Shown: in pieces, positions 52,572 through 57,394 of the stretch
Layout: every line of letters starts with the position of its first letter
Numbering within the stretch: position 1 is the first letter of the stretch
DNA from: Ranitomeya imitator
Lineage: Eukaryota
Length of the DNA stretch: 64,000 bases
Assembly: GCF_032444005.1 (NCBI RefSeq)
Contig: NC_091284.1
Location: forward strand, 133,548,001 to 133,612,000
Direction: 5' to 3'
Made by a program: the position numbers and the translations under genes
Notes under the pieces: model-generated
Told to the model about the DNA's origin: nothing
Seen by the model: the letters and a program-made list of their open reading frames with translations, nothing else
Databases searched by the model: none

Positions 52572-55500
52572 TGTAGCACATGGTGAGAGAGTGTTTGGAA
52601 GTCTGCCAGGGTGGACACACTTCCATGTGTCCTGGCTGGACACTGCAGAGTGGCCTATGTGTTGGACGGTTCCAAGTGGGGACAGACGTCCTGAACAACA
52701 CACAGAGACCATCTTTAGGCTGGAGAGCCTACGTGCTGGACATAGCACAGCCTGTGTGCCCACAGACGTGAGAGAGAGCGGAGCTCTATTATGGACATTG
52801 AGAAAACATCGATCTGAAGTAAGACTGTTTACCTGTTGTTGCTGTCTTGCTGGTTTATGGAGCAATAAACCTGAGAACTTTTAAAGAAACGTGTCTCCTG
52901 AGTGTCACCCGCCGCACCTAAGCGAGTGTCCCCTAGACCCGTAGCGGGTGAAACGCTACAATTGGTGTTTTAGACTGCGGGCAACGATCCAAGGAGCACG
53001 TGTTGCAGCGCTGGCTGGTCTGAGCCAGAGGAGTGGACGGTCTTGAAAACCGTGAGTAGTGCTGATCGGGATCAGTGAGAACTGTTGTTTTGGGATACCT
53101 CTGAGAAGAGGGATCCGGGAAACTGTGTGGCCGGGCACCAACAGGTAACGGACAGGTGTCCGTGTGTACTGACCGGGGTCAGACTGGAAGAAAACAGAGA
53201 CAGTGCGTCTGGGCATCTCTGAGGCTGAGGGGTGTCCAGGAGCCCGTGAAGTTGCCAACGGGTAACGGTCTGAAAACCGTGTATTGTGCTGACCGGGGTC
53301 AGTGAAAAACTGTTTTTGGGCTATGTTAAAGCCGGGTGCGTAACGGTCTGAAAACCTTGTATTGTGCTGATCGGGATCAGTGATAATTTTTTGTAACAGA
53401 CAGGAGTCTGTGCTTTGCTGACCAGAGGTCAGTAAGAGACTGAGTTTTTTTTTCCTGAGAGTCAGCTTGCTGTGGCTCAGTGAGGTCACGAAGTTTGCTG
53501 TGGCTCGGCGGGTCCACGAAGGTGACAAGCGGCTTGCTGTGGATCGGCGGGTCCACGAAGGTGACAAGCGGCTTGCTGTGGATCGGCGGGTCCACGAAGT
53601 CTGTGGTTGAGCCGTGCAGCGCGGTTGCAGCAAGAGGTTCCGTAGCAGCAGGAGCTGCAGTGGCGGCAGCAGCTGTTTGTGATCAGCACCCGGAGGTGCC
53701 AGTGATTTGGGACTGCAGCAGGGGCTGTAGCAGTGCCAGCAGGAGCTGGTGAAGTGTTGAAGAAAAAAAAAAAAAAAAAAAAAACATTTTTTTTTCTCTT
53801 TGCAGACTCTTAAAGGGCCAGTACAGGCCCAGAGACTAAGTGGTGTACTGTGCGAACTGGGGCCTGAGTGCCGTGGGGAAGTCCACAGAGTGTACCCCAG
53901 GGAAGGGAGTGTCCCTAAAAGTGGGCGGGGACCCAAACGGGGATGGTTGCCCAAAAGGGAGTGGAGTCCCAAAAAGGGGCGGTAACCCAGATAGGGGTAG
54001 TAGCCCAAAAAGGGGTGGAATCCCAAAAGGGGGCTGTAACCCGAACAGGGGTGGTGTCAAAAAACAGAGCACTTGCCCAAAAGGGGGCGGAACCAAAAAA
54101 AGGGGAGCCGATCAGTGACGAGTCACGACTGTGTCCTTTTTGGCTGGATGGAGAGCGTGTGCGGGGGTTGTTAGACCCGGGGAGGGAAGTGTCTTTGCTG
54201 AGGACCCTTCCAGGAAGTTCTGTGTCACCTGGGACAAAGGCGAAAATAAGTGGCATAAGTGGGGACGCTAAAGGTCTTCAGGTAGCCACTCTCTACATTG
54301 TCGCAGCTGATGTTTCCACATACCATGAGGTGGCTGTAGTCCCGAACTTGCCGTGTCCTATGGTAATAGGACAAGATTTGGAAGCACTGTGGGACTGGTG
54401 GGAAAAAGGTGAAGTGTTTGTGGAAATTATGTGTATGGGAGGTAGTAATGTGAATGCGCCCCCTAGTGTGGACAGACCTAAGCTGGACATGCCCAAAGAA
54501 AATGGTGAACAGGCCCAACTTGGTGAGACAACATTGGCAGAAACACCTCCCAACACTGATGGGTCAGGTATAAGGGCGACCAGAGGAAACCGTGCGTCTG
54601 CCGAACTTACTGACCTGACGTCACCTGAAGTGTGCGACAGTGTGACTGGTAATGAACTGGTAGATAAGGATGTGGTGGTTAAACAGAGTGGAGCTGACAC
54701 CCAGTTAGAGTGTGACTTGGGGGGTCGCCTTATTGTGGGGTGTGACACAGACTCCAAGGGTGACTGTGACATGACAAGGCCAGTAACAAGTGCTACAACT
54801 GAGTATGATGTACCGGTATCAGAAATACTGACACAGGGGAACGACAGGGCTCCACAGGGTGAAGACAGGATGGCAGTGACAGCCATGCCAGAAATTGTGA
54901 CCTGTTTAAGTGGGGACTGTCGGTTCCAGGAAGACCAATTGGGTGGTGGTGACTTCCATTCAGATGATGACACCAGTGGAAAAGAGTGCAGTAAGGCTGA
55001 CTCAGGTTCCGCTGGCAAGTCTTCCTCCCGTCGCCGGAGACGTAGAAAAGGCAAAGGGGCTGAACCAGTTGCACCTTGTGAAGATGTGACGGAAGAGGGT
55101 GAAGGCTCCAGAAAATCTGGTGCTGAGGACTTGAAGTGTCTGGAGTACTTTAAAGTCCCAGGGGAACGGGACGAACCTAAGGATGTCACCGCTAAGACCC
55201 CAGAGAGGGTTGACGCTGACAGTGCAAAGTCTGAGGGTGCAGAAGTGGAGGTGGCCACCAAAGAAGTGGTGCCTGAATTAGATACCTCCTCAAGTGATGC
55301 ATGCTCCACCAATCCGGAGGATGGGAGAAGCGAGATAGAGCTGCTCAAAGAGTCTCTCAAACAAGAAAAGGCCCTGAGACAAATGGCGGAGCACAGGTTG
55401 GATGAGATGGAGAAGGAGGTCTCTGAGCTCAGAGGTCACCTGACAGTGTGGCACAGTGAGAATAAGGCCTTAGGCGAAAATGTGGTAGTGCTCCGAGAAG

Positions 55501-57394
55501 CAGTAAGAAGTCTTCTGTCAGAGGAGAAGTTACGGGTCCGAGACGTACAGCAGTCATCCCCGAGTGATAACAAGGCGGAGCTGCCGATACCCATCTTGGC
55601 AAAGATTGTTGAGAAGGGTAAAACTGAGGAAGAGCTCGCGGTAAAGGCAGAACAAGACAGTCACCCGGTCATGGCAGATGTCTTAATGGAAAGGTCCAAA
55701 GAAGAACCGGAGCCGTCCGTCCATGAAGAGAGTGAGACCCCGCTCTTCAAGAGTGTGATAGATGTACCCGAGGATGTGCAAGAAGCCTGTACCGGTGAAG
55801 GTGTGCATGAGGCCTTTAGAAAAGCGGTGGAAGCATGTAGTGTGCACTGGGCACCAGAGACTAAACAGTTGGTGATACTGTCGACTATGGAAGTCACAGT
55901 GAAGCGGGTGGCTGTCCTGAGGGATATGCACCTACACTGCCTCCGTACAAAGCAGAAGATCATTTTGAAGAATGATGAAGCCATTCGACGTTTGGAGCGT
56001 GAAAGGAAAGCTCTTAGTCGGCTGGGCTTAGTGGAAGACACAGTCCAAGTACCTAAAGGTCTGGTGGCGAAAATCATTGGGAAACTTGGGAGAGTGATGC
56101 AGGAGATGGTGGATAAATCCGGTCTGAAGAGACTGAGGATACCCGCTGATGAAGAGGTCCAGGTCTTGGGTGAAGATGGGATGGTTCCGTTCCTGGTTGT
56201 CGGATCCAGAGAGAGTCTCAGGAATATCCGCATGCTCCTGGAATATCGCATGGCATACCTAAGGGAGGTAGAGCAGCTGAGACTTGAGAGATGGCAAGTT
56301 AATAGACAGCTGCCAGAGATGCGAAGAAGTTTGCGTAAGACCAGAAGTCCTCAAGCGGAAGCTAGCAGGGGACATAGAGAAAAGTGGATGGATTGCTCTC
56401 CAGGCAATAAAAACCATGGGAGAAGGTGGCCTGATGAAACGGGTGGAAGCAGTGATGCCTCAGTTAGCTCAGGGTTAAGTGACCTAAGCAGGAGATCCTG
56501 TAGCAGACGAGATGTCAAGGGGTCATCGTTATTAAGGGATCTGACCGAAAGGGATGACGAATGCCGACGAAAGGGTTCAATGACAGGCCCTGACTTAAAC
56601 GGACGGTTTGACTGTCAGGGACGACTGAGAGGGGTCTCTAGTCGGTTTAGGACAAGTGCCAAGCCCCACGGCTTTAGGCAGAGGGGGGAGGTATGTAGCA
56701 TGGCTAAAGCTTGTATAGTCGATGGGAGGTATGTATCACAGAGAAGACTTGCCGCTGTGATGTAACCCGGAGTGTTTTGTTTAATACACATAAGGCAATA
56801 AGGAATTGTTTAGGATGTTTGGGTCCGGGTTACGGGTAGCTATGAGAGATGGGAGGGTCTGGCTACCCATATACCTCACCCCTGGGTAAGGGGCATAACC
56901 ATGCCTATTTGTTTTTCAGGACCTGTGGTGATGTCATAGCCACATGTCTAATCATGTGACGTTACTTCACCAATGGGTGTGGTTTCAGGCTACTTAATGG
57001 AGATGTGTAGCACATGGTGAGAGAGTGTTTGGAAGTCTGCCAGGGTGGACACACTTCCATGTGTCCTGGCTGGACACTGCAGAGTGGCCTATGTGTTGGA
57101 CGGTTCCAAGTGGGGACAGACGTCCTGAACAACACACAGAGACCATCTTTAGGCTGGAGAGCCTACGTGCTGGACATAGCTCAGCCTGTGTGCCCACAGA
57201 CGTGAGAGAGAGCGGAGCTCTATTATGGACATTGAGGAAACATCGATCTGAAGTAAGACTGTTTACCTGTTGTTCCTGTCTTGCTGGTTTATGGAGCAAT
57301 AAACATGAGAACTTTTAAAGAAACGTGTCTCCTGAGTGTCACCCGCCGCACCTAAGCGAGTGTCCCCTAGACCCATAGCGGGTGAAACGCTACA
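52572..57394 (+). mobile_element. Non-autonomous LTR retroelement (Gypsy/Gmr1-like) carrying a captured FXR1-like segment
   Basis: 389-bp direct repeats 52572-52960 and 57006-57394 (TGTAGC...GCTACA, 5 differences seen); ATAT TSD in AT microsatellite context; TGGTG PBS-like site; no RT/RH/IN. Confidence 0.93.
53943..56765 (+). CDS. 940-aa chimeric ORF: retropepsin-like domain, acidic linker, coiled coil, FXR1-like KH0-KH2-NES
   Basis: [12 protein letters not shown]...CPMVIGQD retropepsin-like; residues ~602-790 align with recalled FXR1 (DVPED..[60 protein letters not shown].ER). Confidence 0.92.
   Translation: [940 protein letters not shown]

Follow-up and report, generated by a model that had tools for sequence, protein, structure and literature searches.

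Retroviral capture of host genes is classic; long-lived endogenous families in which selection maintains a captured host protein are rare in animals. The endogenous retroviruses (ERVs) of crocodilians captured the host KIT-ligand and nectin3 mRNAs, and the captured open reading frames (ORFs) occur in several species; purifying selection on them has been reported and an advantage for the virus suggested (Chong et al. 2014, PMC4299795). Long terminal repeat (LTR) retrotransposons of plants capture gene fragments, an example being maize Bs1 (reviewed in PMC13317346). No account of a captured FMRP-family RNA-binding protein in a mobile element came up in literature searches. The element described here occupies positions 52572-57394 of a 64,000-nucleotide stretch of the poison frog Ranitomeya imitator (NCBI RefSeq assembly GCF_032444005.1, contig NC_091284.1, forward-strand positions 133,548,001 to 133,612,000), which is termed the window and numbered from its first letter. 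Two LTRs enclose a single ORF, and the C-terminal part of the encoded protein derives from FXR1. On balance the element is probably a young copy of a multi-copy, non-autonomous LTR family of retrovirus type in dendrobatid frogs, with the FXR1-fusion ORF providing a factor that handles the element's own RNA.

The FXR1-derived module and the element that carries it

The ORF (53943-56765, plus strand, stop codon included) runs uninterrupted for 940 amino acids (aa) and, judged by alignments and profile matches, fuses three parts: retroviral remnants, a segment with acidic, Arg-rich and coiled-coil stretches, and a piece of FXR1 without introns. No Pfam match to gag, reverse transcriptase (RT), RNase H or integrase occurs in the 940 aa, and the element must therefore be non-autonomous. 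The FXR1-derived module opens with a KH0 domain (aa 598-688; 55734-56006, plus strand) matched by Pfam KH_9 over aa 603-682 (E=8e-19), and is followed directly by a KH2 domain (aa 689-775; 56007-56267, plus strand). Sequences of human FMRP crystal structures match the two back to back, the FMRP N-terminal domain over aa 600-688 (KH0, E~1e-19) and PDB code 2QND over aa 687-774 (KH2, E=3e-21), and the Pfam KH_1 match to aa 700-743 scores 20.9 bits, slightly below the cut-off of 21.5. KH2 has a short variable loop and a GxxG loop of sequence GKLG at aa 713-716, whose glycines are kept at position 713 in 12 of 12 copies and at position 716 in 11 of 12. The remainder of the protein (aa 776-940; 56268-56762, plus strand) aligns with the helix of the nuclear export signal (NES) region and a degenerate FXR C-core and ends in a basic tail. 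The Pfam FXMRP1_C_core match (aa 770-881) reaches 26.4 bits, below the cut-off of 29.6, and the related protein P0001 attains 31.7 bits. The C-terminal tail evolves fast, with 19-39% identity between subfamilies, the RGG-type tail is degenerate with no RGG box evident in the module C terminus, and Agenet/Tudor domains have no Pfam match in the ORF.

KH1, which separates KH0 and KH2 in FXR1, is a clean 60-residue gap relative to host FXR1 and is missing in all dendrobatid members of the family. In alignments with the host FXR1 protein P0012 and others the junction falls at 56004-56009 (plus strand), between ...RLERER and KALSRL.... Exon skipping was considered as the cause of the loss and rejected. 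The missing block is 60 residues long, exon 8 of FMR1 is 57 codons, and KH1 is present in relatives from Anomaloglossus (below); a deletion after capture is therefore more likely, as far as these alignments indicate.

The AlphaFold2 (AF2) model of the module has a mean predicted local distance difference test score (pLDDT) of 91 and comprises KH0, a continuous helix that passes over the KH1 junction (model residues 54-96), an entire KH2 and, at the C terminus, a long helix. The modelled KH0 superposes on the FMRP structures 4QVZ, 4QW2 and 4OVA at 0.8-1.0 Å over 74 columns, and the second domain matches type-I KH folds with TMt values of 0.74-0.83. The module is thus confidently predicted to fold despite the lost Agenet domains and KH1.

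An earlier note, made from the letters of this DNA, had proposed that 389-bp LTRs about 98.7% identical enclose one open 940-codon ORF free of RT, RNase H and integrase, which alignment and Pfam searches confirm, and had expected profile and BLASTP searches to return KH and FXR matches at aa ~600-790, where KH_9, KH_1, the C-core and the FMRP structures were indeed found. The GxxG loop it reported as kept in the form GKLG lies at the position given above. The description of the segment as continuous from KH0 through KH2 holds insofar as both domains are present; the absence of the intervening KH1 had been overlooked, and Agenet is absent as well. The retropepsin-like N-terminal remnant and the mosaic family members described below had also escaped that note.

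The LTRs (52572-52960 and 57006-57394, both plus strand) are each 389 bp long and identical at 384 of 389 positions (98.7%, five mismatches). Both have TGTAG...CTACA ends, of the TG..CA type, and each contains an AATAAA signal (52864-52869 and 57298-57303) followed by a GU-rich stretch. At usual vertebrate rates the divergence of 1.3% would place the insertion a few million years ago. A unitig of the unique left flank, assembled from a DNA sequencing run (X4), terminates precisely at 52571, where the 5' LTR starts. The sequence ATATAT is read directly on both flanks (52566-52571 and 57395-57400) and is compatible with a target-site duplication of 4-6 bp; the ATAT duplication of the earlier note is matched to that extent but carries little weight because the site lies within an (AT)n microsatellite. 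No solo LTR or second copy of the element was found within the 64-kb window.

Two nucleotides past the 5' LTR lies a sequence resembling a primer-binding site (PBS), TGGTG... (52963-52980, plus strand), with the position and TGG start of retroviral PBSs; the window contains no tRNA genes. The untranslated leader (52961-53942, plus strand) spans approximately 1 kb and contains three occurrences of a 47-nt double-hairpin motif (53035-53081, 53262-53308 and 53340-53386), a tandem repeat with a unit of ~41 nt (~53465-53600) and an A-run (53763-53786). The predicted RNA fold of 52961-53460 is significantly structured relative to shuffled sequences (z = -3.4), and indel variants among copies concentrate in the leader. 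Splicing of the leader from GTGAGT near 53050 to an acceptor-like site near 53812 was considered and rejected, as the contigs show no such joint. The 3' untranslated region (56766-57005, plus strand) separates the ORF stop from the 3' LTR, and a purine-rich sequence, AATGGAGA (56996-57003, plus strand), which adjoins the LTR, is by direct reading a weak candidate for the polypurine tract. There is no A-run after the ORF, the only one being upstream in the leader, so the captured cDNA lacks the directly following poly(A) tail of a processed retrogene mobilised by a long interspersed element (LINE). The layout of LTR, PBS-like site, structured leader, one ORF and LTR is that of a defective provirus.

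The part of the ORF upstream of the module has no counterpart in FXR1. Short repeats of the KGVESQ type (aa 1-54; 53943-54104, plus strand) are common to P0002, P0003, P0007 and P0010, and the start of P0003, from R. variabilis, is near-identical to that of the window ORF. They are followed by a degenerate domain resembling a retroviral aspartyl protease (aa 55-152; 54105-54398, plus strand), with LLDPG in place of DSG and the sequence VIGQDL; in the family alignment DSG is retained in sister subfamilies. The match to Pfam RVP is weak (E=0.1, profile positions 11-92 of 101), the look-alikes returned by a protein language model are all RVP PF00077 clusters (0.95, with 175-180 features in common), and the AF2 model of the domain is unusable (pLDDT 44). 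The domain may thus be a remnant of a retroviral protease. The acidic, Ser-rich variable region (aa 153-455; 54399-55307, plus strand) contains an Arg-rich patch, a putative nuclear localisation signal, and has relatives neither among Pfam families nor among language-model look-alike families. A predicted coiled coil (~aa 456-530) and a linker to KH0 complete the upstream part (aa 456-597; 55308-55733, plus strand); the region has weak Pfam matches of coiled-coil type and a motif, RQ.AEHR.DE.EKEV.EL, that is conserved family-wide. Two candidate origins were rejected. Similarity of aa 153-597 to a Hyla coiled coil was unconvincing (E=0.028 for a single comparison), and an Agenet remnant upstream of KH0, hinted at by BLASTP, was dismissed by profile-profile comparison with FXR N termini (E=0.63). 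On the opposite strand, two long ORFs of 356 aa (52956-54026, minus strand) and 355 aa (54293-55360, minus strand) run across the leader and the sense ORF. Both are of low complexity and rich in Pro, Ser and Leu, and they probably result from the purine-rich composition of the sense strand.

Relatives, origin of the module and copy number

The related proteins returned by database searches all come from dendrobatoid frogs. All relatives from R. imitator, R. variabilis and Dendrobates tinctorius have the KH0-KH2 arrangement without KH1. The gene models of the family consist of one exon each (2448 bp encoding 815 aa and 2382 bp encoding 793 aa), whereas the R. imitator host FXR1 gene has introns and spans at least 34 kb, which points to a processed origin of the module. 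A maximum-likelihood tree (IQ-TREE, 59 proteins, 277 columns) groups the element clade with copies from Anomaloglossus baeobatrachus (Aromobatidae) with a support of 100/99; the stem measures 0.19 substitutions per site. Within FXR1 (98/95), the sister of the group is R. imitator FXR1 (99/82), FMR1 and FXR2 form separate clades, and the element branches are ~10 times as long as that of host FXR1. The tree shows that the module, as far as protein phylogeny can assign it, derives from FXR1 and not from FMR1 or FXR2, in line with the preference for FXR1 expressed in the earlier note. The same note had proposed an old capture in a young copy, and this is borne out as well: the capture is old relative to the copy in the window because diverged subfamilies exist in three dendrobatid species and relatives that retain KH1 exist in an aromobatid.

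The two Anomaloglossus proteins, P0013 and P0016, are compact and FXR1-like, with KH1 present and Agenet absent. They share with the ORF the derived residues DMHLQCLR, RRLE and VMQEMV, which together with the well-supported joint stem favours a single old capture common to Anomaloglossus and the element. The sharing is confined to the FXR1-derived part, with no protease-like, acidic or coiled-coil parts in the Anomaloglossus proteins, and a tree that excludes Anomaloglossus from the element group and places the element clade with dendrobatid FXR1 is not rejected by the approximately unbiased (AU) test (p=0.095); for these two reasons a single capture is favoured but not proven. The same two observations speak for an origin in two steps, in which a processed FXR1 retrogene was a host gene first, with the Anomaloglossus 'fxr1-like' genes as its descendants, and was taken up later by a dendrobatid element, or in which the Anomaloglossus copies are an independent retrocopy. 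Against the joint grouping in the free tree and the shared derived residues, this is a serious possibility but not the probable one.

A separate case was noticed in Hyla sarda, whose proteins P0027 and P0052 lack Agenet, have a KH0-KH1-KH2 arrangement and form a long branch inside FMR1 (100/100); one of the Hyla proteins has a long N-terminal coiled coil fused on and a 21-kb multi-exon gene model. Their position in the tree makes these proteins a parallel case that arose independently, from FMR1 instead of FXR1.

In DNA run X4 the k-mer depth is 250-560 for unitigs matching the ORF with 0-1 mismatches and 6.3 for the unique-flank unitig, which suggests tens of near-identical copies. Contigs covering the 633-bp module at 80-100% identity number 814 in X4 (all identity bands) and 101 and 13 in two other species, and as a crude estimate there are probably hundreds of diverged copies. 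Annotated paralogues are located on different chromosome-scale records. The sequence immediately to the right of the element (57337-57894) is a hyper-abundant repeat, preceded by the (AT)n microsatellite; its contig depths in the DNA run add up to ~2x10^5 to 7x10^5, whereas the unique-flank unitig has a depth of 6.3.

Within the family, sequence identity changes in mosaic fashion along the protein. Against the window ORF, P0004 scores 93-97% over aa 153-530 and ~70% in KH0/KH2, and P0001 scores 89% in KH0 and 37% in the protease-like part. These patterns point to recombination between subfamilies, as expected of co-packaged retroviral RNAs.

Several copies are annotated by NCBI as genes for 'RNA-binding protein fxr1-like', and in an older R. 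imitator assembly the protein P0031, named long-chain-fatty-acid--CoA ligase, has the KH2 module of the element as its first 78 residues (86% identity) and is probably a chimeric annotation spanning an element copy. The annotation as host genes, and the constraint that the protein appears to be under (below), would fit a domesticated gene family whose copies work for the frog, perhaps as RNA-binding proteins of the germline, with the LTRs incidental. The presence of tens to hundreds of copies, many of them near-identical, the near-identical LTRs, PBS-like site and TG..CA ends of the window copy, and a subfamily turnover and recombination typical of mobile elements make domestication highly improbable.

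Constraint, expression and a proposed role

The variability of each module position in 12 copies follows that in 41 canonical FXR/FMR proteins (Spearman 0.27, a value reached by 1 of 5000 permutations), and 23 of the 34 near-invariant FXR/FMR positions are kept in the copies, the two GxxG glycines among them. Over the module, the variants listed for diverged genomic contigs include only one indel. Across the element as a whole, 12 indel variants are listed, of which one, a gain of 3 nt, falls within the ORF; the other 11 are in the non-coding parts, chiefly the LTRs and leader. Third codon positions account for 19 of the 40 shared variants with the best support (p=0.04). None of the 40 makes a stop codon, 15 are synonymous (26% expected, p=0.075) and the replacements are mostly conservative; the crude ratio of nonsynonymous to synonymous rates (dN/dS) from the 40 displayed variants is ~0.6. 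Subfamilies that are 30-45% apart in the module still hold ORFs of ~800-940 aa in three species. Taken together, the comparisons argue with moderate strength for purifying selection on the protein, and the selection on the captured segment suggested by the earlier note finds protein-level support in the avoidance of conserved sites, the scarcity of indels and the dN/dS estimate.

The same data bear on whether the FXR1 fragment is a functionless passenger, its ORFs seeming intact through fast amplification and through annotation that picks open ones. The youth of the window copy, with LTRs 98.7% identical, would be expected in that case, as would private mutations without codon-position bias, a dN/dS not far from 1 and the fact that protein databases contain annotated, hence open, ORFs only. 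Yet ORFs of full length persist in three species despite the protein divergence of the module, and the diverged contigs, which are unfiltered by annotation, are nearly free of indels in coding sequence while the non-coding parts have many. Substitutions also avoid conserved FXR positions, and KH1 was removed as a clean domain with a confidently predicted fold retained. A passenger is accordingly judged unlikely.

Three small, transcriptome-sized runs from three studies yield ORF contigs of 1.4-1.8 kb at ~99.7% identity without unique flank. The ratio of ORF depth to that of the hyper-abundant flanking repeat in these runs is approximately two orders of magnitude off that of the DNA run. The three runs are probably RNA and the element is probably expressed.

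Since the ORF is open and constrained in replicating lineages, we infer that the protein serves the element itself, and the preferred reading is that its task would be to handle the element's own transcript. RNA would be bound through KH2 and the basic tail, the coiled coil would multimerise the protein, and the Arg-rich patch and FXR-type export helix would permit shuttling. The resulting ribonucleoprotein could help the gag-less RNA to be exported, translated or packaged into helper particles, perhaps in part through a natural affinity of FMRP-family proteins for the nucleocapsid (NC) of retroviral Gag and for each other. FMRP is listed as a binder of HIV-1 Gag NC and as incorporated into virions (PMC7471995), which makes a role of the module as a packaging adaptor conceivable by analogy. 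The element itself would be copied in trans by an autonomous helper, which is taken to be retrovirus-like because ERV1-type elements are reported to be the youngest LTR class in D. tinctorius. A more specific proposal is that a gag-less element recruited a host RNA-granule protein as a 'neo-Gag/Rev-like' factor, which would bind the element's own structured leader, multimerise and deliver the RNA to helper particles or drive its export and translation, and which selection at the level of the element would have maintained over millions of years throughout Dendrobatoidea. In this full form the proposal is rather doubtful.

A possible alternative target of the module is the host protein. The predicted complex of the module with host FXR1 has an ipSAE of 0.48 (the best of three controls scores 0.00); at least 79% of contacts recur between runs, and the pLDDT of the partner is 78 or higher. 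The mark set for complex scores is reached by 51 of 78 solved complexes and by 2 of 108 mismatched pairs. Values of 0.60 or below comprise just 5 of 78 solved complexes yet all four of the mismatches that pass (of 180). The prediction gives weak support to pairing of the module with host FXR1, and it is on such pairing that a decoy, as suggested by the earlier note, would depend: a truncated FXR1-like protein that pairs with host FXR1, FMR1, FXR2 or their partners and acts as a dominant negative, blunting RNA-based control of the element. FMRP-family members form homo- and heteromers, and the module, as a decoy might, retains KH0 together with the long helix region but has neither Agenet domains nor KH1. 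The complex score, though, is low enough that a pass is more likely to be wrong than right unless the pairing is probable a priori, the GxxG RNA-binding loop is conserved although a decoy has no need of it, and nothing in the present analysis ties frog FXR1 to transposon control. A decoy function is improbable on these grounds.

Several observations weigh against a family of mobile elements that makes its own RNA-handling factor. A helper was not found: a search with the N-terminal 200 aa returns family members alone, and the two gypsy elements of the window (below) were rejected as candidates, being unrelated and without similarity. The LTR flanks observed are those of the window copy, and the evidence for the viral ancestry of aa 55-152 is weak. 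The selection signals are modest, with a dN/dS taken from only 40 variants and a synonymous excess at p=0.075, and the annotated paralogues are biased to intact ORFs. The private changes of the window copy are spread over all codon positions with no codon bias, as expected if individual insertions decay neutrally and selection then acts on the replicating lineages. Lastly, no run is on record as RNA, and expression is argued from relative depths.

If the protein does serve the element, a non-autonomous 'parasite of a parasite' would have swapped viral proteins for host parts, and FXR-type RNA granule biology would be linked to retroelement replication in highly transposon-laden vertebrate genomes. 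The family would also constitute a set of natural FXR1 'mutants', without Agenet and KH1, that are predicted still to fold. Copies annotated as 'fxr1-like' host genes in poison-frog genomes are to be flagged as element-borne.

Neighbouring elements and comparison with known systems

The remainder of the window contains further mobile elements. Two are of the Ty3/gypsy chromovirus type (19637-25011 and 37774-43216), with LTR pairs 99% identical. The second has an intact 1488-aa ORF (38826-43292) encoding gag, protease, RT, RNase H, integrase and a chromodomain, and the reading frame of the first is broken into two parts (20568-21827 and 21754-24711). Tandemly repeated 40-bp units (25866-26185) lie just past the 3' LTR of the first gypsy element. 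Intact transposase ORFs of the Tc1/mariner type, each of 345 aa, are located at 6575-7612 (plus strand) and 31824-32861 (minus strand) and have nearly identical Pfam profiles (HTH_Tnp_Tc3_2 and DDE_3). An ORF of 284 aa (15648-16502, minus strand) contains only an RVT_1 domain and is probably a fragment of a non-LTR element.

Compared with host FXR1, the module has KH0, KH2 with its GxxG loop, a helix of the export-signal type and part of the C-core, but lacks the Agenet/Tudor domains, KH1 and introns and is fused to unrelated N-terminal parts. The order of a coiled coil, an RNA-binding domain and a basic tail in a protein encoded by a retroelement recalls ORF1p of LINE-1. The analogy is functional only, since there is no homology. 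ORF1p has an RRM and its role is in target-primed reverse transcription; any chaperone or cis-binding role of the frog protein would be conjecture. Plant LTR elements with captured host gene fragments are likewise non-autonomous and amplified in trans, but their captures are usually short and decaying, whereas the frog element, in a vertebrate, keeps a two-domain module predicted to be foldable across subfamilies.

The closest likeness in layout is to the transducing retroviruses of the Gag-Onc type, in which an LTR and leader precede a viral remnant fused in frame to an intronless fragment of host cDNA, followed by a second LTR, and in which pol and env are lost and a helper is needed. The frog element differs in being endogenous, in the germline and multi-copy, persisting and diversifying across frog species, and in that gag is gone too and the cargo is a fragment of an RNA-binding protein instead of a growth-control gene. 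The crocodilian ERVs are comparable as endogenous lineages with captured host mRNA. They keep most viral genes, with env alone or nothing replaced, and few copies have been described (six insertions for nectin3) (PMC4299795), whereas the frog element keeps only the putative protease remnant, is present in far more copies and carries, in an amphibian, an FXR1 cargo from which one domain has been excised.

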